A stretch of 44,364 nucleotides of DNA from Lenisia limosa (Eukaryota; Protista; Breviatea), in contig LPNZ01008929.1 in NCBI GenBank assembly GCA_001655205.1, forward strand, positions 1 through 44,364, written 5' to 3'. The notes beneath the pieces are model-generated. The model was not told the DNA's origin and made no database searches. It worked only from the letters and a program-made list of their open reading frames with translations. Position numbers and translations under genes: made by a program. Below are positions 1 to 42,640 of the stretch, one piece after another (the first letter of the stretch is position 1; every line of letters begins with the position of its first letter).

Positions 1-455
1 GGGGGTTTGTAGGCATTTCGAAGACTTTCGAATGTTTTTCGGTCACTATTTCCCTAATTTCTCCAGTGGCTCCGGAGTGATGCTTGCGGAGCCCCGTGTG
101 TCAAACTCAAGGGGCCAGTTTTGCTGCTTTTGACTTCTTATGTTATGCTGGTCTATGATAGGGTATTTGGAAGAAGTCATTTTCAATTTTCAAGGTCAAG
201 GTCTAACCTGTAAGATATCTGGGACGTTGTCGCATCGACAGCCCCCCCCCCCTTCCCAACATAGGGNNNNNNNNNNNNNNNNNNNNNNNNNNNNNNNNNN
301 NNNNNNNNNNNNNNNNNNNNNNNNNNNNNNNNNNNNNNNNNNNNNNNNNNNNNNNNNNNNNNTGAATGAAGTGTCTGCTACAAGCTCTAATTACCTAAAA
401 GTTTCTTCAATTCAATGGAGGTATAAGAAACTGCATAATCTATCAAGTGCTGAAA

Positions 456-16499: not shown

Positions 16500-19400
16500 T
16501 TACCCGTAAATGTACTCAGTAAGTTGTACGGCATCTTGCTCTTCGCCCAAGGCGTCCATTTCCTGGATATCTTCATCCTCTTCGTAGTTGTCCATTTCAT
16601 ATTCATCAAGGTCTTTGTCCATTTCTAAACTATCAGCAGAAATTCAGCCTCACCATCTTGCTTTGGAGGGGCCTTCTCCTTAAAGAAGCCCTTTTTAACA
16701 CCAAAACCTATCAAGGCGGCACCCATCAATCCGCCACCTGTGTCATAAGAGACCGCAGCACAGCAGGCTCACCAATGATGAGATAGTTATTGACTTCGTT
16801 GTCGTCAACCTGTGTGACTTGTTCCACTGCGGGGGCAATAACAGGTGCGGTAAACCGCAACGGGGTGAGAGACAACACATTTTCAATGGGAGGAAACGCA
16901 AAGTCCAGGCTTGCTATCATCACAGTTTCAACCGTCTCAGTGACCTTGACGTGAGAAATGGTGATGGCCTGCCTACATTGATAGTGTCGACGCTGACAAA
17001 AATTGATATTGGCTCAAATGACACAAGGCTCTGAAAATAAAAAGAAATTACATGAGCGAGTGAACTCACCTGCACGTGAAGAGTATCAGCACTGCATACG
17101 ACAATGTTGGCTGAAGATACCGAACACGGAGATATCTGGAGCGATAAGATGAGATGAGTCCCCTACAGTTGCGTTGTATTCATCAAGTGACGGAACTTCA
17201 ATGGTGGCAGTAATACCATTTGACGTGATACCCTTCGGCAAAGCCTGCACTTCGAAACTGGAGTGTTACGAGGGTTCAAGACAAGTTACCTGAGCTGTTG
17301 TGCTGATGAGGGTCCAACGTTGTTGATGTTCCACTCCATGCTGAATGAGCCACCAGTGGTGACAGTGAAGATGGTATCGCCAGTTGAACTGATACCTGCG
17401 AAGAAGCCTTGTTGAGGTATCATCAGCATTGTCACGGATGAAGATGCAATAATCTGAAGAATGAGTGCTATTTCAGGCAAACCTCCGATGTGACATCAAC
17501 AATGTTATTGCTGAGGTCAAGGTCCTGAATTGACATGGTAGCAGCGCCATTGACAGTCCAGTTGCCGACAGACGACAATGAGTTCGTTGGCATCTGGGGG
17601 TGAGCTATAACGGTTGCCTACCAAGCTAAAAATAAGGTACAAACATCCGGGGGTTGAAAAGGTACAGGCAAGAAAATTGGACTTGGCATTGATTGTTGGG
17701 ATTTCGCATCTGAAGAAAACATGTTCCTCGGAAGTTGTCCAGTTCTGTCCAACAGCAGTGGAAATTCCGGCAATAGCAGCCACAGAATTGTTTACCTAAG
17801 TAATAAAGGTCACAAGAAAGCAAACCAAGGAACAGCTTGACGGGACGCTTGTAACTTCATAGGCAAGAGGGATGGCCACTAAATTGTTAATTCACGTTTC
17901 TATAAAACAATAAATACTCAGCAGCATTATCAGCCGTTCAGAATATCCAGTTGTGTCGGAGACATACCAGCGACCTTGACATTGGGTGACGGCGATGGCC
18001 CGTTATTTGTTAGGAGAAATGTGAATGTGGAGGATATTCCTGTGGGTGGCTTGGTAGGGTTGACGCTCGCTGAAACTGACAGGTCTGTTTGGGGGCTTGT
18101 CACTGTGATGTATGTGGTACTGTTGTTATCAGTCTGGATTGGGTCCAGTGCGTAGGTCGATTCACTGTGAACAAGATAAGTCATGTTGGTGTTTTCAGCG
18201 ATTGAAACGTCGAAAGGAGTTTTGATTGAAAACAGAATGGAGGCGATTGTTCCTGATGAGATGATGCCGGTGACGCACGTTATAGTGTCCTGAAGAGTAA
18301 CACAACAAGAAGGCCAACATGATCTGGTAGTTCACAGGTTGATGACGACGAGAAGACTGACAGCGACGACGTGTCCAATCCACCAGGGAATGAGATGAGA
18401 CCTGATGCAGTAAATTCACAACTATCAATTATTATAAGATAACCATCAGAGCCATTGGAGCCAGCCTACTTTCAACATTTTTTGCATCTGCTGGACCTGC
18501 GTTTGCCATGGTGTGAGTAACCTAACAAGTAAGTTGTTCATGAGTATATGATTGATCCACCTCAGTACTACCGCCCGAAGCGGTGGTTGATGGCGAGGCC
18601 TTGAGGCGAATCGTGAGATCGGTGTTGTGCTGAATGGCTGCGGTCACAGTCGCCTCGTTGTTTCTCATTATATTGTCAGCACCATTATGCAGAACTGAGG
18701 CCTACAGTGGTAAATGGTAAACACAATTAAAGTTGGGCTTGGGCATGCTAACCGAAGCTGTAACAGACGTGACTGTCGAGTTGATGTCGCTATTCAGTTT
18801 CCAAGAGAGCACAATCGGGGCCGATTCTCCAATGGCCACGTCACCAACGGAGCAAAGCACGGTATCAGAAGACTGGGTACAGCCCGACGGAAGGGTAATG
18901 ACTGTGACAGGAACTGACGGTTTATTGAAAGTTACAACAACCTGAAGATAAGACATACTGGAGAGGGCATACCGATGAAGCGGTACGTGGGCCCTTGTTG
19001 AAAACCGAGGAGGAGAGGACCAAATAGTGCCCTGCAGCCGTGGCTTTGGGATTGGTGATGCCAAGTGACACGTCACTGGATTGGTCGAACTACAGCGTCA
19101 GACATGAGAAGACACCAACATAGTAAACGCTGGTAATTAAATTTCCAGAGGCAGTGTCGCCGCCGCACGTGGTCGAAACCGTGAACTGCTTCTGGTCAGA
19201 CGTTGTAGTCCCTATTTCAGCCTCGGAGGGCATTGCAATCATGAAGGTGGTGGCAACCTGGGAGTGAGAGCGACAAAAAGGCATACGGATTCTCCGGCAA
19301 GAAGGCCTAGTGATGAGTAAGTGTAGTTGCAAGATGACAATGAACAATCCGCTGCAGGAACGGCACTGGTTACCGAGTCCACAAGAGCGTTGTCGCCAAC

Positions 19401-22400
19401 TAAACCGTCAACGCAACAACCGAAGGACTTCACAAAGCAACCACCCACCGAAGGAGACCACAAAGTTGTCACAAGGCGAAGGGCCGGCGTTTGTGAGAAC
19501 AGCCACAAAACGAAGAGTCGCATCCGGCGCCACATTGGTCCTAAAGGGTTATGCGGATGGCGGACCTACGAAGGGACGGCGGCAGAAAAGATGGACAGCT
19601 CGGACTTCATCATCGATTCAGCAGTGACGCTGGCAATGTTGGGGGTTGACATTTCAACGGTTGTCGTGTTGGCAGAGGCAGTGAGGGTGACGGACGGGAG
19701 GGGCTCAGTCAAGTTGGATGGAATAGCCACAAATCCTCTGTGGTGGTGAGTGTAGCTGTTACAAACCTGATGCTTTTGGATGCTGCTGAGGCAACGGTTC
19801 CAACGTTACACCTGTAAAGTCATTTAAGAACAACAAAAGATGAACAAAAAGTAATCACGCTGACATGATAGAAGTTCCGACGAACGAACAGTCCAGGCCA
19901 ATGGGAAGGCTGAGGTCCAGACCAAGGTCGCTATCCAGAGAAACAGTCACATTATCAGATGAAATGTAGCCCGAATTGCGAACCAAAATCTGAAGGTCAG
20001 ACCCCAAGGAAGGAGGCCTACCGAATATGCCAACTGGCTGCCAACAATTGCCTTGCTGCCCACGGTGATGGAAATCTAAACCGTCAATGCCATGCAAAAC
20101 TGTTTCGCAAGCTCAAAGGGGCAAACCTGGATATCCGTCCTTCTTAAGACTGTGACAGACGGGTAGGCCCCAAGATTGGCAAGGAATTCGGTACCAGCCT
20201 CCGTTGCCTTAGGGGTGAGAAGGATGATAGAGCATACCTTGCTACTGAATGTGATAACACACTCTGGTGTGGACGCTTCAACTTGGTACTGTATGGCCAT
20301 TGTCTTGGACGTGGCGACTGGCATGGACCCGAAGTCACACGTGATGTTCGTGGTGCCTGACAGTAAGAATACCTGGTAGTTCTTACCAGTGATACACTGT
20401 GAGAGACCTCCTGAAACGTAGGAGACATGAGGGGGGATGTCAATGGAGATAACCGATTGACTCGAGGGTGAAGGGCCCAGTTGCTGCATTGTATACATTA
20501 CCACAACGACTGAACCTGCGTTGACAAAGCTTGTCACGTCGGAAGACAATACAAGCGTGGCTTCAGACACCACCGGCAGCGTGACTGTACTCTCCGTCGT
20601 AACGGTGGCAGTATTCGCAGTGGTTGCGATGAACAGCGAGGCCTGCAACAATTATAATCAGAGAATTGCCCTACATTAGTAGCACCAAGTTCTGTGTTCT
20701 TTAAGGAGACTTTAGCATATGATACAATACCACTTTGCAGTGATGGCAACGTGCATCTGAAGTTGCCTAGAGAGTGAGCGGAGTGCGGAGCAAACCTAGG
20801 AACGGTCCACAAGACATTGTCGATCCCGTCGACAGAGCCACAGTGGAGCCACTTGCGGCGGTAATGTCGAGAACCACGTCTTTGGCATCAGAAGGGCCTC
20901 GGCAGAGGACAGATAGCGTCACAATACTCGCTACAAAGTAAACTACAACAAGGCCTTACATGAGCCGTCAACAATGTTGGCGGGGTGTACTGCAGAGTGT
21001 GATAGAACTGACACCTTTGACACGGGTCGGGTTACAGCAGCGGCAGTATGGCTGCACACAGCCGACGATAGTGTCGGTGTCAGAGTGATTGATGCCACTG
21101 AGAGACTGGAAGGGATCTCAAGAACGATGTCTACAAAGTAAGACCCGAAGACTTGCCTACTGTTGGAAACAATGCTCGCGGAGGTCATGTTAGTCAAGTC
21201 GAAGCTCAGATCAGCGGGGGTGCTGACAATGGCAGGAACTGTCACCGGTACGCTAATACTCAGTGTTACGTCTTTTGCCTGTTGCGTTAGCCGCAGAGCC
21301 GCCAAGAATCAGAACATACCATTGTGGGTCCTGAGTTACTCACAGATGCTACCAATCGAACCTGAAGAATGAATCCTCAAACAAGGCTTACCGATTCTCC
21401 ACTGATAAAGCTGGTATCGTTGAGAGAAATAATGGATTGGCTGAGGAACAAGCTGCAGCTGGATAGCAGGTCAAACGTCATGTCAACAACATTGTTGGCC
21501 ACGTAGGCGTCTGTAACACTCGACGTTGAGGCGGAAGCACTGTACGCGATTGCGCCTGTTGGTAAGATCTTTGGCCGGAAGTTGAGCCACTAACCTGGGG
21601 AAGCAGTCTGGTCAATGAGGAACGTCACCGAAAATGTGACCGTGTTGAGAGGGTCAACCAGCCCTGCGAAGGTGGCCACCCCATGTGTTGCATTGGATGA
21701 TGTCAGAATGTCAGGGCTAACTGACATGATAGCAAACACACTCGGGATGTCGAAGATGACTTCAATACCACTGGCCTGGCTTGGACCAGAGTTGCTGACG
21801 TGGAAGCTAGCCACTACGGTCGAGCCAATTGTCAAAGACGTCTGGCTCACAATGTTCAGCTCAAGATCCGCACCGACCACAATATCTAACAAGGCGGCGG
21901 CGCTGTTGTCTGCCAAAACTGGGTCTGTGTCACTGGATGCTGACGATGTCGAAATCGCTAGCGTCGCCCCAGGGTAGCTAATCGGAACCTGGCAGTTAGG
22001 ATTACAGACAGCTTAGATACCTTAATAACGATGACAAACGAGATAGCTTTATTGGCCAAAATCGTGTCGGTGGACCAAGACAGCGTGCAGCTTCCTGTCG
22101 TCAAGTCACTGCCTGAGGGACATCCAACGCCGCGACTCACTCCAGAACTTTCTGTCAGAATACTTACATCCTGGGAGTGAAATGGAGATGTTTGAGCATA
22201 CCTGTGGGATCACGATATCAGACACCGTCGTATCGGCCATGGTTGGCCCAAGATTGGCTACAAAGAGCGAAATCTGAAGGATAATATTCGTAGTATTACA
22301 AACCTCGAGATTCTGGCCAGCCATGACAGTTGTGACCGGTGAGCCAAGGACTGTGGTCTGCATTTCGACGCGAATGTCAGCACCAGTGGCCACACTACAA

Positions 22401-25400
22401 GCCAAGGTGGCGTTGTGGTCGTCGGTGGAGCTGTCAACAGTGCCGCCGCCTGAATGTTAGGAAGGTTGAATCGAACCAACCAATCACGATGTCCGAAGAA
22501 AAGACCAGAGCCGAGCCTTCAGCCGCGTCTGCACTTCCAGAAACCTGGTGTGTTTTATTAATTTCTTGAGAGTTTGGCCTACCTGGAATGTCAAGACTTT
22601 GCCGCGCGCAATTGACGCAATAGTGCACGTGACGGGGTAGAGGTCATCACAAACGGCCCCGGTGGGTGTGGTCACGACGCGACCGGATAGCTCGACTGAG
22701 GTGTGAGACAGGGCAAAGGACTAACCGGCGGACGGCGTGGTGAGCGTGACAGTAATGGGTCCTGCGGTGGCTGGACCAAGGTTGGAGACGTAGCTGTAGG
22801 CCGTTACTACTCTTGCCGGAAGAACGGTCTCAGCTGGGTACGTCGCGATTTGCACAGACATATCGGCTCCCTGAGAGTGAGAATACAGGCACGTGACCGA
22901 CCTTGGACACGCCAATGCTGCCAGAAATGGACGTCTCGTTGTTGAGTGTGGCGCTGGCGTCGACAGAGAACATGGCGTAGCTGCTTGTGGGTGTGAACTT
23001 GACCGAAAGAGAAACGGATGACAGGGGCTTCAGGTCCGGAAGCGGACACGAAGCGAGTGTGCACTCCAGTGTCGGGTGAGGCGGCGTGAGAAGCAGAACC
23101 GTGGTCAACTCGGGAGACTCGCTGACGGTGAGGTTCAGTACCTAGACGTAAGATGGGACTGGAAGGACCAACAGAGTTGAAGTTTGTGGACGGCCCGCTA
23201 TTAAGGACGATGAAGGACATTTCGCCGGTTGATTCGAGGAGGAGCAAGGACGGGGCTACAGGCACCACAAACGATGACAGCACCAATGTGCTTGCAACAG
23301 TGATTGTGGTGACTTGGTACGCATCGTCATTGCTGAAATCGGACTCTACCCCAGAACCGGCCGAGGTTCCTGACACGCTGACATTGGCGGTGATAATGTC
23401 GCCGGCCGGAGTGTCGCTGTCCACTATTACGGAGAGAATGCCGTTTCCTGGTTCATAAGAGCACGGGGGGAGGGGCTTACCGTTAGCGTAGTCAGTTGTA
23501 ACGCTGAGAAGGTCACACGTCACACTAGCGTTGGCGACAGGCGTTTGGTCCTGAAGAGTGCAGCTGGATGACAGCGAGCCAGTAAAGAACAAGGTCGGTG
23601 TGAACGTCAACCGGTTGAGTTTGATGACAACATTGGCTGTAGCGGCCGGGGCCGGGCCTAAATTCGCCACCTGCAAATGAGAAAAGAAGGACCCTCAAGT
23701 CCTACCAAAATGGAGAATGCGGCTGCGTCACCAGCAATAGTCGAAGTTGGGCCGGAGATGACAGTTCTCAAGTTGTAATCCTGCAGTACGTATATGGCCA
23801 GAGGGTCTGAAATGAGAGCACTTGTGTCAGCGACAGAAGCTATGGCGCCTGGGGCAGCAGGGTTGTCCAGAATCTCAACAAAGCCGTAGAGCTTGGTGGT
23901 CAGTTGTCAGCAACAGCCTACCTGCGTTTCAGTAATGGAAGCGGACACGGCAAAAGCCACAGAAACGGTGTATGATGTCACACTTGGCGTAATACCAGGG
24001 TCGACCAAACAGTCCACGTAGTAGGTCAAAAAAGTACATGTTGCTGGGATCGAACTGGATGCCGAGTTGTAGACCAGAGACGTTGGCATTGTTCCATTGG
24101 GGTGGCGGAAGTGCATGCGGTAAATAAACCTGGGGGGGTAAGTTGATCAAGAGCGAACCTACGTATACGAGTCGGAAGGGCCATAGTTTTCAACCGAGCC
24201 AATAAAGACGATGCTGGCCTCCGGAGCAGTGTACATTTGTCCGTCCTTGAACCCAGACGTTGACGCTGTAATGCGGGGGTACTGAACAGTTAACTCCAAC
24301 AAGAGCTTACCAGTTTGTTGGTCCTTGCAAATGATGACGTCATATTACTAGACGAAATGCCAGTCAGATGTGGCGTCCACGTGTAGTCCAGCGTCACATC
24401 CAGACTATGACCGGGCTCAGACGAGGGGTTGGTCAGGACCGTGACGGAGAGGAGGGAGCGTGTTCCGGAATCGATGGTCACGTCACTGGTATAGTGCACA
24501 ATCAGTCCGTTGTCTGTAGGTGTGGTGGTGTAGACGGCGGGGTAGACAGACATGAGCGTGACGGGTTGAAGGGATTCGAATGTTAGAGACACCTCCAACG
24601 ATGTGCAGGTTGAGGGACCCGAGTTAAGGATATTGGCAGTGTACGTCGTTGACTGGATGGTTACATTTGAATGAAGGCTCAAGAAAACACATACGGTAAT
24701 TGCACCTCTCCCACCAATCCTGCAGTGACAGTGGAGCTCCCTGAGATTGAAGAGGACAAGCTGGCTTCGGTCCGAACGGCCAAAGCAAACGTTTTAGACA
24801 CTCCGGTCACACTCTAAGGAGTTTAGACACCCCGGTCACACTCTAAGCCGGTCACACTCTAAGGAGTTTAAACACACAGGTCACACTCTAAGGAGTTTAG
24901 ACACCCCATTGAGCATGTAGTTGCTCCCCTTCAGCCCCATGCCCACCACTCCCGAAGACTCCTGGCCGACAACTTCCGAGGAAATGAAATACACACCGGT
25001 GGTTTTGGAGGACGGAACGATGACAACAAGGTCAACCTCACCAAAAAGACCCTCATACACCAAAGCAGTTGTGCATGTGGTCTCAGCGTCTCCGTCGCCC
25101 TGAACGTGAGTTTTACAGCGTCAAAGGGGGCTTACGTTGATGACGGGAGCGCTGCACGATGACGGTACGGATTTGAAAGTGAGGTCCGTCGGGAGGGTGA
25201 ACACGGCTTGGACGTCATACGCGGCCGACGGTCCCGAGTTGACGAGCGCCATTCTGAATAGTCACCAACACAATAAGGCCGGACCAACCGGACAAGAACG
25301 TAGTCTCCCGATACAGCCTCAGCAGGATCCGGCAGAAGCATGGTGGCTATTATCACAGACTGGGAAACGCTCGTAAACTCGTAAGCCACCACATTATTGG

Positions 25401-28400
25401 AGTCAATGAGGTCCATGGAGGCAGGAATCTGGAGCATAAGACACCATCGTTCCTGCACCTACGTCAGGGTCGGTCGACCAAAACTCAATGAACATTGACA
25501 CCTCATCCTTGTTGCTTGCCGAAGCTTGCACTTGGACAAAGAAGCTTGTTGAGTCTCCCAACGGCATAGCCGTGGTATAAGGACAAACAATTGAATTTCT
25601 GAAGGTGATGAGCAGGCAGTTTGCGACTTACAGATCTTCATCAAAAGTGCATATGTCCGGTGTTGAAGACACGAGAACCAGGGTAGAAGGGACCGAAATC
25701 TGAAGAGTCAATGATGGAAGAAGCCAACAAGAAGGTGCGAAGAAGCGACGGTGTGTGGCCCGTAAGACACAACGTCCACTGTGATGTTGAGAACCTTGGA
25801 AGCCAAAAGAGACCCGTCAGTCTCCAGCCCGTCAATCTGTGGCCTAATGAGACAATAGGTGCACTTACTTGGACATTGGTAATGGCAAGGTCTGCATGAT
25901 AGTTGCCTTTATAAACAAAGACAGCACCGTTGCCAGCCTCATAAATTGTACTATAGAGATAAGCGCTGCAGTCATCGGGGTGATACTTGAACGCTCCGAT
26001 AGCCAGGTCATTGAGTCCTAAAGCGTGACGGCTCACAGCAGCCTACCATCATCATTGAAGTCGCCTGACGCGAGGGACACGCCGAAGCCTGCATATTGGC
26101 AATCGTTTGGACCAGTGATGACTTGGTCCGGCTCGTCAGGATAGATGGGGTCTGTTGAGAGTTCCTGGGCGCGGGAAAAGTAAATGTAAACAGTGCCAGT
26201 TCCGTTGATGCCTAAAACGTGGCATTATTGACTTTGTTGAGGAAAGACTTACCGTTCCAGGGCGCGGCCACGACGGCATCCAAGCGGGAGTCTTGATTCA
26301 TATCGCAAAGCAAGACGGTATGGCCGAACTCGCCGGAATCGTCCTTCATGCCATGCGCGGTCCAGAAGGGGGTAGTTTCCAGTGTGCCAGCTTCTCGTCG
26401 GTAGAGGTGAACAGAACCGCCAGCTGTGAAGGGCTGACCGACAAGCTACATAGTTAGGCATGTGACGGAACTCTAACCAAGTCATCATCGCCATCATCAT
26501 TGACGTCTCCGGAACTCAAGGACCAGCCAAGCGCGCCGCCCGGCACGGCGCCGTCAAGAACCTGTGTGATGGACGGGGATCCTCCAACAACTCCCTGAAT
26601 GTTAGCCTCGAAGAAAATGCAATACAATTATGCTTACAGTGTAGAGCTCAACTCGACCAATAGCGGGTTTCAACTACAGGGTCAGAAGCACAACTTCGTC
26701 CCAACCTTGCCACCCAGGACAGATGGGATCGGAACGTGCATTGGCACGCCGACAGCAAAGTCTGTTGTCAGCTCACTGGGTCGGTTCAGTGCAGCAATTG
26801 AGTGTCCTCTGTAGTAGCTGTGTTCGGCAGTGTTACTTGTCGGCAGGCCAGACTCCCATGACGTACTTGACGACAGTGGCGTTGGGCTGGCTAAGTTCTC
26901 ATCCGGCACTGCGCTGAGGTGTCCAATTCCGCCTGGAGAGTTATGTGGTACTTTTCAGGTGCAGCACCAACCAGCTTTGCAGGAGTAGCCATCAGACCCG
27001 CAGGTTCCGCCAATACCATCTTGGCACCGGGCCTAATGGTAATAAACAAGGGCAAGCAAACCTCGCAACAATCGCCATAGTCATAGTCGCAGCTTTTACT
27101 GTTGTACTTTGTGTCGCAAAGTCCATTGCCAATGACAGAGGAATCAGCGGAGCATCCATCAAGTGAGAAAAGATAATTCCGCATTTTAACGTAACCCATG
27201 ACAGCAACACCCTCCGAGGTCGACGTGAGGTCAGCCATGTCAATCGAGTTCTTTGACGACCAATCATTGGAGTGGTCATTGGAACTGGACGAGACCATTG
27301 CGTTGTATGTCAACACAATCCGCGATCCCAACTGAACAGAATTCTGAGACCGGCCTGATGGTTACTTATAAATCACAGCCTACTTGAGACCTTGTAGTTG
27401 AAAGAGTTGTCATGTGCCACACCAACGAGATAAAACTTTTGAAAGTCCATTCGGAAGGGACCGTTTGTTCCCACAGCGTTCTACAGTGTGACATGCCAAG
27501 ACCCCTACCGTCATGGACGTGTCCGACACTTCCATGAAGGTATTGTCCTCACTGGTCACCGCGATTGTTTTGCTGTTTCGAAACACCACGTTGAAAGGCC
27601 TAGAAATGAGGTACTAAAGGAGCGTACCCTGCAGCGGTATCGGCTTCGTAAATGAGAAAATGCAAGGTCAAATCGGGGCAGTCAGCAGCATCAACGCACT
27701 GGAACCCAAACGCCTAGGTCATAAGTCCGAGTCCCCAACGCTTACGAATTCGTCAATGTAAACGTCGAAGTTGCGCAGTTGCAGCATGTGCCCCCAGAAC
27801 TTTCCCGAGCTTTTCCCAGTGTACTGTGTAAACTTGAACTGCAGACCTGCCATTGGGGTCTGACCAAACTACGAAATGAGACCATGGCAACCCTACATAG
27901 CTTGAAACTTGACCAAGCTTGGCTGGAGCTCCAACAACTAAATCCAGAATGCCGTCCCCATTGACGTCTGCTGGTACAATAGAGCCTGTGCCGTTATCCG
28001 ACCATTCAGATTAATACAATATTCAATATATAAAAAGTATACATATATGCATATGATGTGTTGTATCAGAGTATATTATGTCATAATATATCATATGAGA
28101 TGACTATTTATGAAAAACAAAATGTTGTCATAAATGATTAACGTGGTTCAGTTCTCTTTTTTTTATTTTGCATTGGAAAAATTGCGAAAATAATCTTAAA
28201 TGACCCTTCGAGTTAATTTCGCAGGTTAATTTGTCCACAGTTCTAGTTATGTACTTCTAGATAAGGCAGGAAAAACGGTAATTGTCAACCCCCCTACGGC
28301 CATCAGCCTTGGCAGTAAGAGTTGCGTCCGTTGCCACGCTATTGGGGTAGAGTAGGAAGTACGATGAAAAACCCGTACTAGATAAATAGATGCGAGTTAA

Positions 28401-29757
28401 CCGTTCATCTGGAATGGTAAGGTCATCTTTGGACTCAGAATACCCTACCGATGCTGGAAACAGCGAGGTCAGAGAGGCCGTCGCCGTCAACAAGGTCGGG
28501 TATCTCGCTGATAGTGGTGCCAAAGTGGCAGTTCTCCAGGGCACACTCGCCGGCAATACTAGTCAGCTGAAGAGTCAATGTGAACAGTACGTCATACCAA
28601 GGTTGAAGCAGCGACATCGGAGTAGATGTGAACCGCTCCGTTTCCATCATAAGGAGGTCCACTCGAACCTGGAGTGTAAAAAGCGTAGGCGAGGGAAAAA
28701 CTTACCTTGAACATCTTTATAAGCACCAACAGCAAGATAGTCAGCACCGTCACGCTCGAGAGTTGCCAGTGAGTATCCAAACCTCGTGTCCGAGCCCGGT
28801 ATAGATAGGGTCCATGTGGGCGAAACCATGACGGGATCGATGACAATCTAGAAATGTTACCGGAGTGTTAAGCAACCCACGGGATACTGAGTCATGTCAG
28901 TGACAAGGAACTGCACTGCCAAGCCAGTGGCTGTCACAACAAAATGACTCTCCAACTCCTCTCCTATATGGTCAGTAACCAGTAGCAAATAAAATAAATG
29001 CAAACCAAGGTCAGAGAGGACCGTCAGGCCTTTATAGGGGATTGTGCCTCCAGAAGCCTTGAAAATGGCATCTTTTTCTGACGAAAGAACCACCTGTCAA
29101 TCATCATGGCTCAAAATAGGTACCTTGCTGTTTTGGATACAATTGTAGAAAAAAAGAGAATTCAATTGCCCACTAAATCTTTTCCCAAAGGCCGCCCTTA
29201 CCGTTCCATTAACGTCATCGAAGCGAACATCAATGTAAAACGATTGCCATCTTAATAATGTCAGGACCTTCTTTTAGAATAGGAGAACACACCCTATCAA
29301 GCCTTGGGATAGAAGGAACATATGCTCGGGCTGCGTAGCATGCGTCCGAACAACTTCTTCAAAAGTGCTACAATCCCGCACCACATAGCCGGGTCTAGAA
29401 ATCCATCTAATGCGTAAATGCAGCAGTGCATCCTTGGCACTTACCCAGACTGGGGGCCGCATCGCGAGGCCAAGAGGACAGAGGCCAAAGGCCCTGCCAG
29501 CTGGAGCCTTACTCCCTGGACGTCATTCCGAGGATGCGTTCACAAAGAAAAGATCAATCAAAAAGAAAATATGTCTGCGGTAAAACCCTCACTTACAGTG
29601 TCAAAAGGGGTGAGGGTAAGGGTGCTTTCATTGTGTTCGGTTATGGATAGAGAAGTAACTAGGAAAGTCAGAAAATAGCTTTTCCACACTCGTATTTACC
29701 TTCTACAATGAAGTATATAATAAAAAGCCATGGAATACTCAAGGAAGAGCCAAGCAT
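16500..29757 (-). CDS. ITGA: Giant integrin alpha chain (~3,200-3,400 aa, many tiny introns); symbol is family-level only
   Basis: Signal-like N-terminus MLGSSLSIPWLFIIYFIVE. Seven FG-GAP repeats (RFGYSLA...LAVGAY; DGDGLSDLAVSS; DVNGDGILDLVVGAP; RGHSIA...FAVGVP; DVNDDGDDDLLVGQP; DMNQDSRLDAVVAAP; DFNDDGLNDLAIGA). ~18 Ig-like repeats, TM YLIIGGGLMGAALIGFGV, then KKGFFKEK and an acidic tail ending TEYIYG*. A continuous frame can be built using only GT-AG introns. Confidence 0.93.
16800..25900 (-). other. Array of ~18 DUF11-like Ig beta-sandwich repeats (alpha leg)
   Basis: ADL(S/A)I-type starts and an N-x-G-P motif recur every ~430-560 nt: YGP, NSGP, NSGP, NYGP, NLGP, NSGP, NLGP, NLGP, NSGP, NSGP, CRGP, QLGP, NSGY, NAGP, NKGP, NAGP, NNGP, NVGP. 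Several repeats end in D-x4-NN. Confidence 0.8.
24793..24907. repeat. ~29-bp tandem repeat (about 4 copies, one truncated) spanning an intron 3' end in integrin alpha
   Basis: Unit tttagacac(t/c)ccggtcacactctaaggag. On the minus strand each copy carries cttag|agtgtgacc. Confidence 0.9.
27062..27154 (-). other. LNR (Lin-12/Notch repeat)-like module within the alpha propeller insert
   Basis: CSADSSVIGNGLCDTKYNSKSCDYDYGDCCE fits the C-x-G(D/N)G-x-CD-x3-N-x3-C-x-YDxGDC pattern. Confidence 0.8.
28833..29660 (-). other. N-terminal pre-propeller domain of integrin alpha ending in YPIVIDP
   Basis: Spliced ...FEEVVRTHATQPEHMFLL...IPYKGLTVLSDLGEELESHFVVTATGLAVQFLVTDMTQYP|IVIDP directly precedes FG-GAP 1. 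It resembles the domain ahead of FG-GAP repeats in bacterial surface proteins (recalled pattern, not searched). Confidence 0.6.
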
Positions 29758-30181
29758 GGTAAAGTCGACAGGTAAATGATCAATTCTGAAAAGACGGGAG
29801 CGGTATCCTTCTTGCTTTCATCACTTCGAATGTATTTAAACAATTTAAGACGAATTTTATAATTATCAATTGAAATGTGTAAAATTTAGTGAAAAGGGAA
29901 AGAGAGGAATTTTCTTGACACCAATCTTTCACCCAATTCTCAAATTTTCCCCTTCCGGAACCGCTTGTGATTAATTGGTTTTTAAAGTTCGGTATTTATT
30001 GTTCGAATACAGGTTAAAAAACCCGGATAAAACCCCTCGCTTGATCTATCTTGAAATCATTCCAAAGTTCAATGATATGATTGCATTTCTTTCTCCTTCC
30101 CTGTACCGAATTGTTTACTTTGAGAAGAGGAGTTTATAACGAGTCTTTGCAAAAGCCAGAAGCCACGAGCATATCTTCAGC
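29758..30181. promoter_or_regulatory. Putative bidirectional promoter shared by integrin alpha and beta
   Basis: 424 nt of AT-rich sequence between the alpha ATG (29757, -) and the beta ATG (30182, +). Inferred from geometry only. Confidence 0.65.
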
Positions 30182-33100
30182 ATGGGAGCTTTGCGACTTA
30201 TGTCGCTCATTCTGTTCTTGTTCTCAGTGGCCTTCTTTGTCACAGAAATTGGTGGGTCATGGGAATAAGCACTGTGATTCCAAATGTAAGAGGCTGGTTC
30301 CATGATGTCGTCCACCTCTTTATTCATGAGGTCTTCATTTTGATGTCGTCCGCCACTTTATTCATGAGGTCTTTATTATTGTTGCCTTATTAATTGTAAT
30401 AGGAGCCTCTTGCAGTCTCTACCACCTTGCTGCGTCCCAACAAAGATGTGATGTTTGGTATGTTGGCTTGTTTTCTCTGGTTAGATGGTGGAAATCAAGA
30501 GATTATTTTCACTTCGTAGTGAATAATAAAGGGGAGTGAGCAGGGCATTTATTTGAGAAACTTGAGGCTTTTTATTGGGTGTTAGTTTTTTGCACAAGCT
30601 TTTTTATTGATGGTTGCCCTCACGTACAGTCTCTTGAATCCCGAATGTGGATGGTGTGCCGGTGCAGGCGGCATCTGTGTGACTGGTACCGGAGAAGACT
30701 TCAGAGGACAGCCAGCTGACTGCCCTTCAAACTGGTGAGGGTCTCACTGACAACCTAACAACCAGGGTGTCACCTTCTGGTGGTACTGTGTCGGGTAGTG
30801 AAGTCAGCGATGCCATTATGACACCTACTGAGGTGGCTGTAAAAATCCGAAAGGGAGAAACGGTCAAGGTCAACGTCACTGTGTCGGCAGTTCGCAAGTC
30901 TCTCGACCTGATCTTTGTTGAGGACTTGTCCGACTCTTTTGAGAACGACCTAGTGTTCCTCGCCAATATTGTTGAGGACCCTTCAGCTGCTGGTAAGCCC
31001 GCTGCCCATCCCCAATATCATCTATCCGGGCACCTTTTCGTCCTCTGTTCGTATTCAGCACGGGCGAAGATGACTGCAAAATATTACCTTACCATTTTAG
31101 GCCTTGTGCCGCGAATTGAGACTGAGCTTCTTGACACCACGACTTTCCCAGACCTAACCCTTCGCCTGGGTTTTTCAAGTTTCATTAACAAGGTAGGGAC
31201 TTGTTACGTTGACATTCAAGCCAATGATTCCCTTTGGACGGATTCCCTCGTCTTGCCCCAATTTTGTGTTTGAGAAGCGGGTCAGCTTAGATGGTAAGAC
31301 CAGCAATAACCGTTATTTTTAGTTCCACCTTCTTCTGGATTGCATTGCGATGGGACTGCGGATCCATTTTGTATTCTGAGAAGAGACTTGTTTGCAGCGG
31401 TCACATGTGAAGGATACAACGAACCTTCTGGTGGTATCGATGGTAGGTTAAGGACTCATTGTCACATCCAGGATGTGTGCATTCTCTTCCCGTCTTCAAC
31501 TTTGGTGCTGATGCACGCCGTATTCTCCTCCTCTCAACTGACAGTCTCGTAAGACTACATCAGCGCTTATTGTTTAGTCTGAACTTGCCGGTGACGCTCG
31601 AGCCTATATGGGCATTAGAGAGTCAGAAAGCGGTATGCTGGGCTGATATTTTTTTCTTCTTGCACTGAAACCTTTAGCTGAGGATCATATGTGGGATATC
31701 GTTACTCCAACTGGTATGATGGCGGTGCCTTTTACCAAATAGACGCTATTGTGACAAATGACATTAAACTGGTTGCGGGAGAAGTCTGGCATAGAGAAGA
31801 CATGGCTGAAGATGTTTGGTGTCGAAGAGGAATGCTCACACTGTAGTTCCCATCTCTTTTTAAACTCAAACAACAACTCATGAAATACAATGTGGTTCCT
31901 GTGTTTGCGATTTCAGGTGATGCTGACACTCAAAAGCAGTTCTACCAATGTAAGCCTCCTTCCCCTCTTTCTCAACCCATCCTCAGCCATTGTTGACGAC
32001 GTTCTTGGCTTCGGGTCAGTTCAACAGCTGAGTAAGTCACCATTTGTGCTAACTTCCAGGTTCCGATTCTTCCAATATCTTCGAAGCCATACAGGATGCT
32101 TTTAACGAGGTGTCGACTTCCATTGTTCTCTCGGTTGAGCAGGACGACTTCGATCTTATCAAGGACAACGGAATACAACCGCCATCCTTTTCTGGCGTTC
32201 CAACTGAGGCCACTCCAGGGTACGGCGTTTCATTTGATTTACGAAGTTAGAACACCCACAACGCGCACCTTTGAAGTAAGTCTCCTTTACGACGGCGCAG
32301 AGTGGCCCTCTGATACTGGAACTCAAGTCAAGCTTCAAGCTATGGGATGGGGCAGCACCACCATTAATGTTTGTCCTTTGACATCTTACAATCAGGTGGA
32401 GTTTATCCAGGACTGCGACTGCCCATTCACTTGTCCAAACGATTGTTCATCCCAAGGCTCTTGTGATGTAAGAACCGGATGAGACTGACATATGTAGTGT
32501 GGAAAGTGCACATGCAACGCCCCATTTACGCATTTCACGGTGGACTCGACAATTGAAGAGGACTGCAGTAAGTTAGCCAAAGCCTTTGACCACCAGGTTG
32601 CAACCCCACGCTGCCATGCCCTGGTGATGGGCTCTGTAGCGGACGTGGCGTGTGTGAGTGTGGCCAGTGCTTCTGTTTCGACCCCTTTGGTGTGACGGGG
32701 TCGACGTGTCAATGCCTCACCGACTGCACTGGCGGCTGCGGATATGGCACCTGCATGTGTGGTGTTGACGGCGAATACTGCCAGTGCGACTCGGGGTGGG
32801 TTGACGGTCCCCTTGGTCCCTGTACGGCGGCGACGACTTGTGACCCCGACTGCGGTTCACATGGATCGTGTGTCTACGGAGTCTGTCAATGTAGGAACTT
32901 CTCAGAAATACTGGATTTGCCGACAGTTATCTCGAGGGTACGTTGATGTCTCAGGTGACCCCGGTTATTATGGAGACGAATGTGACTGTCCCGGCGCCAG
33001 CGGACCTGAAGGCTACATTGCAGGAACTGGTACGTTAAGATAGGCTTTTGTTGGTGCTTTATTGGGCTGACCAGATTTCAGGATGCCCGACGCTGGTGGC

Positions 33101-36100
33101 GGGAGCCGACTGTTCAAACAACGGCCACTGCGACTGCGGAGTGGTAGGTCATCTTTGTCAAGCTTATTTGTAGTGTAACTGCACGGCACCCTTCATTGGT
33201 GATGATTGCTCATGTGACACATCTCTCCCTTGCCCCATTGAACCGGTTTCAGGACTCGAGTGCGGTGGCCCGACTATCGGTACGAACGGTCTCATCTTAC
33301 CAGCCAGGCACTTGTGTATGTGGTGAATGCGAATGTCAGTTACCGTATTCGGGGGACAGTTGCGGCTGCAGTGACATTCCATGCCCTGCGTTCTGCAACT
33401 ACCAGGGTACATGTAAGCATGCTTGCAAGCTTACCCCCAGGCACGTGTGGAGAATGCAATTGCGACGCTGGATGGTCTGGTGATGACTGCTCCTGTGACC
33501 TCTCAGCCACTTGCCCTGGTTAGAGGTTTACTACTCTTTTGTGCTCTAGATTGCTTGGCTGTTTTAATGTTTAGGTATTGTGCACGGTACCTGCGGGAGT
33601 TGTGGAGAGTACAACTGTGACCCAGGATACATGGGAGACCTCTGCCAATGCCCCATGGCATGCCCCTACAGGTAGGCTCCATTTGCCCTCCTGATTTGGT
33701 AGCTGCGGAGAAGTTGAAGGTCACGGCGCCTGTGTGACTGACTCTAAAAGTGCTATCCAATGTGGTAAGACTGCAATTGTCTCATGCACCAGGAACATGC
33801 GAATGCTTCGGCGATTGGAGCGGAGAGCAGTGCCAATGCAATGCGACCGCAGTCTGTCCGACCAACTGTCTTGACCCTCATGGTGAGTGTCAGTGTGATG
33901 GAACGTGCAGCTGCAACCCAGGATACGACCATCCTGCTACTGGCGACCAGGACTGCTCATGCTCTCAGCTGAGCTGCATTGGTGGATGTAATGAGGTGGG
34001 AAGGTCACATGCTAATGCTGTAGGGCTCTGGCGGGAATTGTGTTTGTGGCTTGTGCGTGTGTCCGATTGGACTGGAAGGTGACAATTGTGAATGTGATGC
34101 GTCTCTTCAATGCCCCAAAGACAAGTTGGGAGTAACATGCGCTGCCAACGGAGTAAGAGTGAACGTCGTTTTGGTCACACAAGTAGGAATGTGAATGTGG
34201 AGAATGCTCGTGTGCCATTGGATGGTCCGGCCCGGCTTGCAATTGTTCAATTGCTGCCTGTCCGTCTGACTGTTCAGGACAGGGTTAGTCGTCTTTCAAG
34301 CTCACGGACCAGGAACTTGTGTGTGTGGATCGTGCCAATGTGACCCTGGCTTTGCCGGCAGTGACTGTTCCTGTCTTGACTCTGCTGAATGCCCTTCTGT
34401 AGACGGCCTGCCTTGTGCTGGACATGGAAGTTGTGAATGTGGGGTATGTCTTTTCTTCCAAGGTGACCTCCAGACTTGTGTTTGCGACTCTAGTTGGTCC
34501 GGTGCAAGTTGCAACTGCAGCCTTCTACCTTGTCCCATTTCGGACGCAGGCGTTTGCAGTTCTATCGGAACGTGCGACTGGTAAGTTGTCACCTCCTTGT
34601 CACGTTGTAGTGGTAGCTGCAATTGTCCCGCAGGATATCTTGGTAGCGACGATTGCTCATGTTTGGACACTGCTGAGTGCCCTTCAACAGAGAATGGACT
34701 GTGGTTTGTTCCTTTCAAAACTTACAACCCAGTGATGGACATGGCACGTGCAATTGCGAGACGTGTGCGTGTGATGCTGGATGGGGCTCAGCCAATTGCA
34801 GCTGCTCCACCCTGCCTTGCCCCTTAGGCAACTCCTCTATTTGCTCTGGCCATGGCTCGTGTGACTGTGGCGAGTGCAACTGCTCCGATGGATGGACTGA
34901 TGACGACTGTTCCTGTCCCCCTGTCGGCCACCCCCTAGCCTTCTGCCCTGACGACTGCGCGGGACATGGTGGGTGATGAGCCATCTTAACCCCCCAGGAA
35001 CCTGTCTGTGCGGAACGTGTGTCTGTGACCCTGGCTGGCAAGAAAGCAACTGCAAGTTGGTCTATATCGTTATTCTGATTGTTACCCTCAAGCTGTTCAG
35101 CGCTGCCCTGTCCTTCAGACTGCAGCGGCCATGGCACGTGTGATTGTGGCGAGTGCGTCTGTGAAGCTGTAGGCTGTTTTGATATTGACAATCCAGGGCT
35201 ACTCTCTTGACGACTGTTCCTGCAACTCAACCATCCCGGCGGAGGACTGTGGTCTTTTTGGCATTTGGCAATGTGACGTTGGCGCTTATTACCTACTGAT
35301 GTTGTAGCACTGTGAATGCCTTGGTGGCTATACTAATGAAAACTGCACATGTAGCCCTCTGCCGTGCCTTTCTTGTGTTAATGGCACTTGTGAATGTGGC
35401 GAATGTATTGTAAGCCCCCCCCCCCCCNNNNNNNNNNNNNNNNNNNNNNNNNNNNNNNNNNNNNNNNNNNNNNNNNNNNNNNNNNNNNNNNNNNNNNNNN
35501 NNNNNNNNNNNNNNNNNNNNNNNNNNNNNNNNNNNNNNNNNNCTCTGTGACTCGCCTCTACTCAATAACTGTTCTGAAAGTTTGGCCCGTGGTAGCTGCC
35601 AATGTGGCGAGGTTTGTTCCTGTCGTCGTTTCATTTTAGTGTGTTTGTGAAATCGGATGGAGTCTTCCAGATTTTGGCTGCAATTGCTCAACAACGCCAT
35701 GCATCAATAGTTGCAGCGGGAACGGTAGGCCTGTGTTTACTGTTATGTCAAGGCGAATGTGAATGTGGAACCTGTGCCTGCACTGCGCCGTACACTGGTG
35801 AAGACTGTTCTTGCAATTCTGAACTCACATGTCCTAATGATTGTTCCTTGAATGGAGTGGTTTGCTGACTTTGTTTCTCACGTATTAGTGCAAATGTGGC
35901 CTTTGCATCTGTGATCCAGGATGGCAAGGCGCTGACTGTAGTTGCAGCTCAGCCCCTTGCGAAGATGACTGTTCAGGCAATGGTAAGCATCCACCTGCCA
36001 GTTATCTTCAGGCGATTGCGTCTGTGGAGTGTGTCAGTGTTCTGGTACCTTCACTGGTGACAACTGTGCATGTGACTACCTTTTGACTTGTGATGAGTCT

Positions 36101-37997
36101 TGCCTATCGTCTTCCCATGCGTACTGTGATTGTGGAGTGAGTGGCGATACCTTGTACTCCTTATTGTCTAGACGTGCGCTTGTGATTTCGGCTACACCAC
36201 GATTGAGAACAGTACTGAGCCTTGCACCTGGTTTGGCGGTGTGTTTTCTCACTTTTCAGTTCAAGCCAGTCCTGTGTCAATGATTGCTCGGGCTTTGGCG
36301 AATGTGTTTGTGGAGTCTGCCACTGTCAGGAAGGCTACTCGTGGGTTCGTCTCGTAGTTAACTGTTCAGTGAATTGGACTGTTCCTGCAATAAAACTGGT
36401 GGCGAATTGCTCTGTGCCTCCAATTGCTTCGACCATGGAGAATGCGTGGTGGGTGCTGCTTTATCTGTTGATGAAGTAGTGTGGAGAGTGTGTCTGCGAT
36501 CCTGGGTGGCAAGGCTCAGAGCTCTGCGACTGTCCAACTGATCAGCTGGACTGCGGTGGCAATGGAACCTGGGTGTGTGACGAGTGTGTCTGCGATGCCG
36601 GATTCGAAGGCACCACATGTGCCTGTGACCTCAACAAAGAGTGCGTCCTTGGCGACAACGGCCAAGCTTGCTCCGGTAACGGCATCTGCGAATGCGGGCA
36701 TTGTGTGTGCGAGCCAGGCTTTGGCCACCACCCAAACAGGACCAATGAGGACTGCTCATGCTCACAAAGCACGTGCGCATCTCTCTCCATTGATGTGGGC
36801 GCATGCTGTAGATTGACCTTTTAGCTGGAGTGCTCCGGGAACGGAGAGTGTCTTTGTGGCGAATGTCAGTGCAATGAGGGTTTCTCAGCAACCAACCTTC
36901 TCCTGCCGACAGATTGTGGTTGTGACGACTCGCTACTTTGCGACCAGTTTGACTACTGCAACGCTGGTTTGCAATGTTGCAGCTCAACTTACTTTCAGAC
37001 AAGGGACACGGGACCTGTCGCTGCAATCAGTGTGAATGTAGCAGTGCATGGAGTGGCTCCAATTGCGACTGTTCAACAAAGTCTTGTCTCTATGACTGCT
37101 GGGGGCAGGGAACGGTATGCCAGTGTTGCTGCTAACGCTGCAGTGTGTTTGTGGAGAGTGTCAGTGCAACAGCGGCTTCGGTGCGGACCCCTTGACCCCT
37201 GATGCGCCCAACACGTGCTCTTGCGTCCTTGATAAGGAGTGTCAAACTTTGGACATTGTTGACGATGTCTCGGGGTATGACCAAAGACGAGCTGACGGTT
37301 TAGCAACGTGACGTCATTGGTGTGTGGAGGCAAGGGCTCGTGCGTCTGTGGGCGCTGTGATTGTGAGACGGGTTGGGCAGGAGATGTGTGCGACATCTGC
37401 ATTAGCATGGACTGCCAAGAGGCCGCCGTGGTCGACTGCAGAGTTCAGGAGTCTTGCGGCGCATGCACAGTATGTCTTGTTTGCTACTAACATCACTAGA
37501 GTGTGGACTGTTTTTGGTGCTCAGGTGAATGCGGTGACGCTGATTACTGTGAAGACAAGGTACGCGGTAAACTGACCTCACGCCTAGGTTGTGTCGGAAT
37601 GTGTGGCAGAAGCTGTTGTCTCGGAGGAGGCGGTGGTGGTGGTGTCGTTCACGGCAGTACTAGGTTTCCTTGGCCTCGTGTCAGCTGCAGCCATTTTCAA
37701 AGGAATTCAGGTGGGTTCCTGCCAGGCCTAATGTTGTAGACGGCTCGCAACAAGCGACAATGGAACAGGTTCAATGCAGCAATGAAGGAAAAGCAATGGG
37801 ATAACAAGGGTAGGAGGTCCTTTATCGTCAAGTCACTCTTTAGAAAATGTGCTGTATGAGGGTGAAGTCGGAATGACCACCCAAAACCCTCTTTATGGAG
37901 TAGGTTATAACCAAGTCAAATGCACACTGACATTCAGGATGAAGCCTCTGTTGAGGGAGATAATGTCGACACTCTGTCCATTTTGAAAGAAATTTAG
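30182..37997 (+). CDS. ITGB: Giant integrin beta chain (~1,900 aa, ~53 introns); symbol is family-level only
   Basis: Signal peptide MGALRLMSLILFLFSVAFFVTEIG. PSI (SCSLY...RCDVCLLNPECGWC). Beta-I domain DLIFVEDLSDSFENDL, LRLGFSSFINK, ILLLSTD, DFPSLFKL, SDSSNIFEAIQDAF. Hybrid domain, ~34 I-EGF repeats, TM VVVVSFTAVLGFLGLVSAAAIFK, and tail ...QWDNKENVLY...NPLY...LKEI*. One N gap (35428-35542). Confidence 0.96.
30303..30378. repeat. 38-bp tandem duplication inside beta intron 1
   Basis: tgatgtcgtccacctctttattcatgaggtcttcattt followed by tgatgtcgtccgccactttattcatgaggtctttatta. Confidence 0.9.
32410..37400 (+). other. Array of ~34 integrin-type EGF (I-EGF) repeats (beta leg)
   Basis: Hand count of the repeated xC-x(n)-C-x(n)-C-x-GxGxCxCGxCxCxxG(W/Y/F)xGxxC unit after splicing. 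The count may shift slightly because of the gap. Confidence 0.9.
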
Positions 37998-40399: not shown

Positions 40400-42640
40400 A
40401 GACTTCACTTTTTGATGATCATTTTCATTCGTCTTCGTCTTACCCCTAAAGATCTCTTGGCTTTCTACAACAATGAAAATTAGGCATTTGTGTCAACGGA
40501 CCCCCCTCCTCACATCTCCAGAAAGGTGATTTGTGGATGATGGGGCGTCTGAAAGGTTATTAGAGACAAGAGAAGATAAACAGAAGGGTTATTAGAGACA
40601 AGAGAAGATAACATAGTTCCACTCAAAACCGAGGATAGTGGCTTTCTTGAAGTGCCCGATGATAACTGCTTATGAAAACACACAAACAAGAGTTTTAACA
40701 ACAAAAAAAAAACAAAGCCCCGTATTTGAGTTGGTCCCTCAAGAGTCCCTCAATCAAGGACACTTTTGTATACAGAACAGTAATGTAGTATTTAATAACG
40801 ATAGATAATAAAAGAGAAATATGAAGCTAACCATATGTTGTTTGTGGCTGTTTTGGTTGGGTGGCTGGTAACACAGTCTGCCCAGTAGCCTTACAAGCCA
40901 TCTACAATGTAAGCCAGTTGCTCTACCAAACACTGTCAGGAAATATGTTACTTCAGTATTTGAATTGATTGTTACTAATGCAAAAGATTCAACCATGGGG
41001 GGGGGGGGGGNNNNNNNNNNNNNNNNNNNNNNNNNNNNNNNNNNNNNNNNNNNNNNNNNNNNNNNNNNNNNNNNNNNNNNNNNNNNNNNNNNNNNNNNNN
41101 NNNNNAAGGGAACTGTGTAAATGACTCACTCGACTCGCAATATGCTGGACGGGATTACTATCACGCTTGTCATCATGGTGAGAATGGATTATTGACGCAG
41201 GGGGGAATTGGTTCCTGAAGTCAGGAGACTGTGTGAATGTCGTGCTCTCATTTGTCATCTGTGTCACCTAAGGGCAGTCATTTTCTTTTATCAGACGAAT
41301 TTCATTGGTCAGCTCCTCCTACCTGGTAGCTGGCAGCAGACACTTGGGTTGTCGGCTTGGGGACAGCCATGAAGGCTACAGCCATTTTCGTGGCTTTTCG
41401 GTGCTTCATAGAGGGGGGCGGAAGTGTATCCAATATCGACACTAGAGGGAATGAAATGTCTTGTCACTTGGGAATTGAAGTTGGAATGCAGAAAAAAAGG
41501 AAGTCATATCTATCTCGCATCACTCCAAACCTGGCGCGGGTGTCTGGGAGAGAACGGGGCTTTGGCTGATGAGGTCATCTTCAAAATCAGAGTCTGAGGA
41601 TTCTGGGGGGGAATAAATAGGATTAAACAAAATATATCATATATCAGATGTATCATCAAAATACCCAGGACAGGGAATATTCATCTAAATACCCAGGACA
41701 ATATTCAAGTGGGAGACACACCCTTATACCCTGTTTTGATGAGGTAAGCGAATCAGAACTGAGACTCGAATAGCTGTCAACCTGAGTGCCTGGAGGAATA
41801 GCAGCTAACAATGTCACATGACAAGAATAATGAGACAAAAAATCTAAAAAAAATACCACATACCATCAAGAGGCTGACTGTTAAGCTTCTTATTAACGGT
41901 CCATTTTTGTGGGGGGGAAGAAGGCTCAGAATCTCGTGAAGACTAACCGATTATTCATCAAAATGCTTTTTGGTTTGCAAAGGTTTCAATTTTTAGTTTT
42001 ATATCTAGAATTTTTTTATACTTGATACCATATTGTATTACATATTATATAGCTATTATATATGATCGATATATCATGTAGTATATAGTACATAAAATTA
42101 TTTGATGTAGTACACAAGACATACATAATACACACATACATACATATGATGTGTTTTCTTGCTCTCAAAAATAGAGACTTATGAACAGGAAACTCACTTG
42201 GGATGAGAAAAAAGACGCCATTGCGGGTTTAGTGAGAGGCTGTTCGCTTGTTTTGGCAATTTGCTTTTTGACAGAACGATATTTGTTGTTATCCCGAGGC
42301 GGTTTAGGGTTCTTTTGAGGCACCCGTGATAGGGTCGGTTTTGGAGCCTCCTTCTCCAGGCTCACCTTGCACTCACTTGTGGCCTGGATAGTTAGTCTGA
42401 AATGCCTTGCTTACATCATGAATCTAACAGCAAACCTGGGATGGTAACGAAAGATGGAAAGATGATTTCGATGAAGGTGCTTGGGAAAGAAGGTTCGATG
42501 ACACCTGGAACTTGGGCGTGTTTCGTGATTCCTGCTTTTGTTAAAAATCTTAATAATTTCGCAGGTTATTCGCGGATTTCGCGGAGTATTCGGAATTGTT
42601 CTGTTTTGCGATATTTTTCGCTCGCTTCGTGCGCCTCTCA
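40400..42640 (-). CDS. Hypothetical Ser/Pro/Lys-rich multi-exon protein (ends uncertain)
   Basis: Exons with GT/AG edges, e.g. SLEKEAPKPTLSRVPQKNPKPPRDNNKY, SSDSDFEDDLISQSPVLSQ, VTQMTNESTTFTQSPDFRNQ. Interrupted by a gap. No family recognised. Confidence 0.4.
40555..40611. repeat. 25-bp direct repeat, period 32 bp
   Basis: ggttattagagacaagagaagataa at 40555 and 40587. Confidence 0.9.

Follow-up and report, generated by a model that had tools for sequence, protein, structure and literature searches.

Replacement of the canonical Arg–Asp clasp residues in a head-to-head integrin alpha/beta pair of the breviate Lenisia limosa

The inner membrane clasp of integrins has been described for alphaIIb-beta3, in which R995 of the GFFKR motif in the alpha tail pairs with D723 of the HDRKE motif in the beta tail (Lau et al. 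2009, as cited in PMC5207772). Here we describe the corresponding segments of an integrin alpha and an integrin beta gene that lie head to head in the genome of the breviate Lenisia limosa, and in which both residues of this pair are replaced. The genes were studied in a stretch of 44,364 nucleotides (nt) from contig LPNZ01008929.1 of assembly GCA_001655205.1, positions 1 to 44,364 of the forward strand, and this whole stretch is referred to below as the window.

Integrins of breviates and of other non-animal lineages have been tabulated by Kang et al. (2020, bioRxiv 10.1101/2020.04.29.069435). According to this work the alpha and beta legs of breviates are long and length-matched, the leg of ITGA is made of DUF11/Ig rather than thigh/calf domains, and the LLXXXHDRKE motif is not seen in ITGB of the Breviatea. 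One Lenisia ITGA is listed there (LenisMan47, 3,346 amino acids (aa), with the motif entry 'GFFKR'), as is a Lenisia ITGB with the entry 'RFNAAMKE present', a transmembrane (TM) helix and NPXY. The same table gives the residues at the clasp position of beta, seven residues (+7) after the Lys that ends the TM helix. An acid is found there in Pygsuia (E, in KAGx4E), in three Ministeria betas (E, D and D), in Sphaeroforma (D, in KGIQMVMD), in Rigifila (D), in Mastigella and in several testate amoebae (D or E). It is also still kept in the betas of amoebozoans, the alphas of which are without GFFKR in all but one species.

The window shows a eukaryotic gene structure with very short introns of 28-38 nt, bounded by GT..AG and mostly ending in TAG acceptors. 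The alpha ATG is at 29757 (minus strand), and the first exons of beta lie on the plus strand, from about 30182-30586. The legs are greatly lengthened in both chains, and in this the pair resembles the Lenisia ITGA/ITGB and the Pygsuia biforma integrins of Kang et al., which have a giant alpha (~3,300 aa) with DUF11/Ig legs and an expanded beta stalk. An earlier reading of the window made without database searches (the sequence-only reading) had taken the two genes for cognate partners, and from their head-to-head position and the extended legs in both they very probably are. The alpha gene and the features around its tail are as follows.

16500-29757, minus strand: integrin alpha-like gene with FG-GAP propeller, long DUF11-like leg, TM helix, GFFKE and acidic tail
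16738-16772, minus strand: predicted intron of 35 nt (GTGAGC...CACAG) that splits the alpha TM helix
16654-16737, minus strand: exon that codes for the rest of the TM helix and for the membrane-proximal tail (GGLMGAALIGFGVKKGFFKEKAPPKQD), the sole open frame
16676-16690, minus strand: GFFKE, read directly as GGC TTC TTT AAG GAG
16625-16653, minus strand: predicted intron of 29 nt (GTGAGG...TTTAG) that separates the GFFKE exon from the last one
16500-16624, minus strand: last alpha exon after this predicted intron, very acidic, EMDKDLDEYEMDNYEEDEDIQ...TEYIYG and a stop

In the alpha chain, the exon that runs from 16737 to 16654 continues ...NNYLII across the splice with G GGLMGAALIGFGV KKGFFKEK APPKQD, and the membrane helix stands directly before GFFKE. 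As in alphaIIb, the TM helix is thus followed by K-x-G-F-F-K, and K, G, F, F and K of the KxGFFKR motif are all kept, but its final Arg is replaced by a Glu (16678-16676, minus strand) at the position of alphaIIb R995. Both the motif, reported earlier as KKGFFKEK, and the 35-nt intron at 16738-16772 were recovered as claimed, the former by direct reading of the minus strand and the latter from its sequence. Splicing is unable to alter GFFKE, because the motif and the latter half of the TM helix lie in one exon, across which only one frame is open. Only the far end of the tail depends on the splice model: if 16653-16625 is left in place the tail closes with ...KQDGEAEFLLIV and a stop, in place of the acidic exon that ends with the TAA at 16502-16500 (minus strand), and GFFKE is the same either way. 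The short Pfam model for the integrin alpha tail gave no match on the alpha tail exon.

The beta gene and its tail are arranged as follows.

30182-37997, plus strand: integrin beta gene with PSI-like exon, probable betaI domain with a DLSDS metal ion-dependent adhesion site (MIDAS), I-EGF stalk, TM helix and tail
37588-37710, plus strand: beta TM exon (...EEAVVVVSFTAVLGFLGLVSAAAIFKGIQ), ending ...SAAAIFKGIQ by direct reading
37711-37739, plus strand: predicted intron of 29 nt (GTGGGT...TGTAG) that separates the TM exon from the tail exon
37740-37809, plus strand: membrane-proximal tail exon TARNKRQWNRFNAAMKEKQWDNK(E), which contains RFNAAMKE
37746-37757, plus strand: RNKR by direct reading, with its N seven residues past the helix-ending Lys, and followed by Q
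37810-37843, plus strand: predicted intron of 34 nt
37844-37899, plus strand: exon that reads ENVLY...TTQNPLYG, with NVLY as the proximal NxxY, then the TT pair and NPLY as the distal motif

The register of this tail was established against human beta3, the tail sequence of which was taken from PMC7768682. Over 32 residues the two tails align without a gap, as the sequence-only reading had it, and the alignment is anchored by the helix-ending Lys and by W-D and NxxY; counted from the clasp position, the latter two lie at +16/+17 and +21. In this register the Lenisia residues correspond to those of beta3 as K to K716, Q to I719, T to T720, R to H722, N to D723, K to R724, R to K725, Q to E726 and F to F730, with WD at W739-D740 and NVLY at NPLY. 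As in alphaIIb-beta3, the clasp position falls seven residues after the helix-ending Lys and has the same spacing to W-D/NxxY. The Lenisia chain also has a TT pair, and its tail after the TM helix carries the proximal NVLY and the distal NPLY (NxxY/NPxY), all spaced as in beta3. The Pfam model Integrin_b_cyt agrees with this register: it puts residues 4-22 of the exon, the first of them the Asn, on profile positions 8-26, although as a weak match below the cut-off (E=0.11). The membrane-proximal HDR(R/K)E motif is absent from the Lenisia beta tail and RNKRQ stands in its place, with an Asn (37749-37751, plus strand) seven residues after the TM-end Lys, where the canonical clasp has Asp. The RNKR segment had been given correctly before, as the direct reading of the plus strand confirms. 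On its two sides, positions +6, +8 and +9 are R, K and R. Positions +3, +7 and +10 after the helix-ending Lys (37708-37769) are Q, N and Q, a stripe made entirely of amides that corresponds to I719, D723 and E726 of beta3. The residues K-G-I-Q after the helix are common to the Lenisia beta and to that of Sphaeroforma arctica (KGIQMVMD in the table of Kang et al.).

RFNAAMKE, the motif tabulated for the Lenisia ITGB, is an exact match to the beta tail exon at 37740-37809, and it was considered as the equivalent of HDRKE and rejected. Its spacing to W-D/NxxY is wrong, the Pfam register differs, and it is shifted by 13 residues relative to HDRKE, to which RNKRQ truly corresponds. The splice that joins helix and tail is a predicted one, with sites in keeping with those of the other introns nearby. 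The donor hexamer of intron 37711-37739, GTGGGT, is used again by the intron at 36449-36479, and when 37711-37739 is read through unspliced the frame stops after six codons. At the C-terminus the beta chain has two possible forms: removal of a 38-nt GTAGGT...TTCAG intron (37900-37937) gives ...NPLYG-DEASVEGDNVDTLSILKEI and a stop, and reading through gives a hydrophobic and basic end of 28 residues with a stop at 37984-37986. Neither form touches RNKR.

The segments described are the membrane-proximal parts of an integrin alpha/beta pair, and they are genuine in their residues, register, continuity and adjacency. The substitutions named by the sequence-only reading, alpha R to E, beta D to N and H to R, were all found, and neither residue of the alphaIIb R995 / beta3 D723 pair is present. 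Judged from sequence, the canonical Arg–Asp ion pair is unable to form in the Lenisia pair, because Glu takes the place of the alpha Arg and both beta acids are lost (Asp to Asn, Glu to Gln). The conclusion that had been drawn from these substitutions, a reciprocal reversal of charge, did not survive: D723 and E726 have become the amides N and Q and are neutralised rather than reversed, and the Arg stands at the neighbouring H722 position. In contrast to alphaIIb-beta3, the Lenisia pair has Glu for Arg on alpha, and on beta D723 is replaced by Asn, E726 and I719 both by Gln, and H722 by Arg, with a polar segment after the Lys. Among the betas of the Kang et al. table the Lenisia chain is an exception, since nearly all of the non-animal ones keep the acid at +7. 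Unlike the Pygsuia beta, in which an acid is listed, it has none there, a loss that may be confined to Lenisia or to this one paralogue. The published motif entry GFFKR and the GFFKE found here can be reconciled in either of two ways, with LenisMan47 being a paralogue or with the column of the table not being literal. The genes themselves are already known; the alpha Glu and the true beta register are new relative to Kang et al. 2020.

The assignment of the two genes is supported along their length by searches of Pfam and of PDB sequences, which were run exon by exon, and this limits the scores. The alpha chain begins at 29757 (minus strand) with a segment that resembles a signal peptide, MLGSSLSIPWLFIIYF, and is matched by FG-GAP on three exons: 27756-28010, where the score passes the cut-off (E=9e-8), 26215-26445, where it lies just at the cut-off (E=1e-4), and one given as 26036-24. 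The thigh and calf domains of the integrin alpha leg were not found with Pfam, and the leg exons match DUF11/CARDB instead (17933-18331 and 20079-20651). On the beta gene the domain matches are co-linear and range from weak to good, in the order PSI, Integrin_beta, I-EGF and Integrin_b_cyt. The match to PSI (exon 30586-30735, E=0.043) and that to the VWA domain of Integrin_beta (exon 31847-31993, E=0.058, a score limited by the single-exon query) are weak, and the top PDB matches across the DLSDS MIDAS are all to integrin beta-8, with weak E values of 0.14-0.7 for a single-exon query. The stalk gives matches to EGF_2, I-EGF_1 and EGF_integrin, and at least 17 C-x-C-G-x-C-x-C signatures lie inside one exon. 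The short tail exons gave no match in the PDB sequence searches. The 5' end of the beta gene is uncertain and may lie at 30182 or at about 30586. An open reading frame (ORF) with a good signal peptide, MGALRLMSLILFLFSVAFF, begins at 30182, and the PSI exon (30586-30735) lies some 400 nt further downstream. The splice phases tried do not link the two, and one or more small exons may lie between them.

The beta gene contains one assembly gap.

35428-35542, plus strand: assembly gap in the beta stalk, shown as 115 nt but really holding 62

The exon before the gap ends at 35409 and is followed by GTAAG and a run of C. A Logan DNA contig spans from 35427 to 35543 with 62 letters, and these were supplied by the independent ENA metagenome assembly ERZ3820729 (NODE_75, 60.7 kb, L002:14782-14843). 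They comprise the remainder of a 32-nt intron that starts at 35410 and then an in-frame I-EGF exon, CDPGFSGSTCEC... As the gap is closed in frame, the beta head and tail belong together and the gene is continuous; the possibility that the gap breaks the beta gene was rejected on this ground. Over 21,233 bases ERZ3820729 shows 0 mismatches to the window, and both tail regions are identical letter for letter. The same assembly reads straight through the C13 run at 35428-35542. The other gaps of the window (267-362, 9006-9169 and 41011-41105) also abut homopolymers of C or G, seen as PPPP or GGGG beside runs of X in translation, and may be closable in the same way.

What holds the two tails together in place of the canonical lock can be approached from the residues that are there. 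Our preferred reading, which we hold with moderate confidence and jointly with the description given above, is a loose charge complementarity of inverted polarity that acts together with packing of the helices and of the GFF turn. The chains would be held mainly by helix packing and the GFF turn, and a general complementarity of charge may assist, with the Glu and the strongly acidic tail of alpha opposite the basic R-N-K-R of beta. The alpha Glu, which is flanked by two Lys, could reach the beta Arg at +6 or the Lys at +8. The Arg at +6 is seven residues after the aromatic that precedes the Lys (beta3 W715), and helical periodicity puts it on the side of the helix that bears the alpha-facing stripe, so that a contact between Glu and Arg is sterically conceivable. 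We infer such a contact with Arg or Lys, and any effect that it may have on activation, from the sequence. A salt bridge swapped one for one is less likely than this general complementarity.

Several points weigh against the preferred reading. The comparison rests on one alpha/beta pair (n=1). The segment G-I-Q-T-A after the beta Lys is far less hydrophobic than the LLITI of beta3, so that the depth of R and N in the membrane may differ from that in beta3. Mice with a disrupted beta1 clasp, made by knock-in, had no phenotype (Czuchra 2006, as cited in PMC5207772), and from this the ionic clasp may not matter at all. No RNA support for the splicing of the tails was seen in the sequencing runs with matching DNA, which are one DNA-type run and one polyA metatranscriptome run from a 2016 study. 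The sole polyA contig aligned to the gene (36390-36559, 170 nt) does not reach the tail, is unspliced and retains the predicted 31-nt intron at 36449-36479, as either pre-mRNA or a carry-over of DNA would. The RNA run matches 30% of the sampled words, but the aligned contigs cover only about 7% of the stretch, and spliced contigs may exist outside this part, which is a hint and not evidence.

The alternative that survives best is that there is no ionic clasp at all, the changes of beta D723 to N, E726 to Q and I719 to Q having come from an altered contact with talin or the membrane or from relaxed constraint, and the alpha Glu from unrelated drift, tolerated because it stands between two lysines. 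We regard this as possible but tentative. D723 and E726 form an acidic motif that contacts K316 and K324 of talin F3 (PMC7768682). As the beta acid is kept in amoebozoans without an alpha GFFKR and also contacts talin F3, its conservation may stem from talin, and the main constraint on it is probably not the alpha Arg. The mouse result also fits an integrin that does without the clasp, as does the fact that the whole alpha-facing stripe at +3, +7 and +10, and not a single residue, consists of amides; with I719 replaced by Gln, the hydrophobic part of the clasp is altered on beta as well. Against this account, a Glu is unusual at a membrane-interface position which is normally basic, and it is suggestive that the gene next door has lost its beta acid at the same time.

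A second alternative is a strict swap, in which the alpha Glu bridges to the beta Arg at the H722 position in place of R995 and D723, and this bridge keeps the receptor inactive and excludes paralogues that carry GFFKR or the beta acid. Both clasp residues have changed within one head-to-head pair, and the beta is an outlier among the tabulated non-animal betas, which otherwise have an acid at +7 as a rule. An engineered reversal of alphaIIb R995D with beta3 D723R reportedly restores the inactive state of alphaIIb-beta3, and the Lenisia pair resembles it in carrying an acidic residue on the alpha side of the clasp and a basic one on the beta side. Position for position it is unlike the engineered pair, the beta clasp position being neutral and the base adjoining it: D to N loses a charge rather than reversing it, the Arg is one position off, and K or R at +8 and +9 is ordinary for beta tails (R724 and K725 in beta3). 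Human alpha10 and alpha11 pair with beta1. These alphas are naturally without the clasp Arg (KLGFFAH in alpha10 and KLGFFRS in alpha11; PMC8748766), which shows that this Arg can be lost, and the beta1 motif HDRRE keeps its Asp (PMC5207772); unlike the Lenisia Glu, the residues there are His and Ser and there is no acid. On this balance we consider a strict swap unlikely, and it is improbable that a clasp of inverted polarity both restrains the long-legged integrin and serves as a pairing code against mixing with other integrin chains. It is very improbable that the unusual residues are an artefact, whether of mistaken splicing in the model, of errors in the assembly or of decay in a copy of the gene. 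Spliced RNA was seen over neither tail, the contig at 36390-36559 keeps its intron and the assembly has many gaps, but two independent assemblies agree letter for letter, and GFFKE is immune to splicing in sharing an exon with its half of the TM helix. W-D, NxxY, TT and NPLY fall at the exact beta3 spacing only under the chosen splice model, no single base change turns Arg into Glu (two or more are required), and the published Lenisia ITGB has RFNAAMKE, the TM helix and NPXY.

Searches for relatives of the pair returned little beyond the window itself. An exhaustive search of representative sequences with the alpha leg exon 23140-23694 gave only the window's own ORF (database protein P0001) and one weak unrelated match; word searches with the beta MIDAS ORF, the alpha FG-GAP exon and the beta EGF exon returned the own ORF or nothing, and two scans of JGI metagenomes gave no relatives of the integrin tails. 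P0001 (L001:10001-11233, equal to about 22807-24039 of the window, minus strand) is a prokaryote-style Prodigal call on a eukaryotic contig. It has Trp at a stop of the window, that is, TGA is read as Trp, which suggests that genetic code 4 was applied, and it mixes coding with out-of-frame sequence. Judged from this entry, the public protein sets for the Lenisia assembly are unreliable. Elsewhere in the window, ORFs resembling a proteasome beta-type subunit at 677-1271 on the minus strand (GGTCIAIAGKDYCIIGADTRMSTGYSI) are unrelated to the integrin pair.

The pair is a divergent version of one that had already been tabulated, and its importance is modest unless the idea of a pairing code holds. 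It corrects the register of the Lenisia beta motif in the published table. It also shows that an integrin can keep GFF, the talin site at W-D/NxxY, the TT pair and a distal NPxY and still be without the Arg–Asp lock of animal integrins, so that this lock is not universal. Its loss amid such a conserved tail layout bears on the age of inside-out activation. Should the inverted charges really pair, the engineered R995D/D723R swap would have its first counterpart in nature, and there would be a hint that in a single-celled organism the electrostatics of the tails help to sort integrin chains into pairs.

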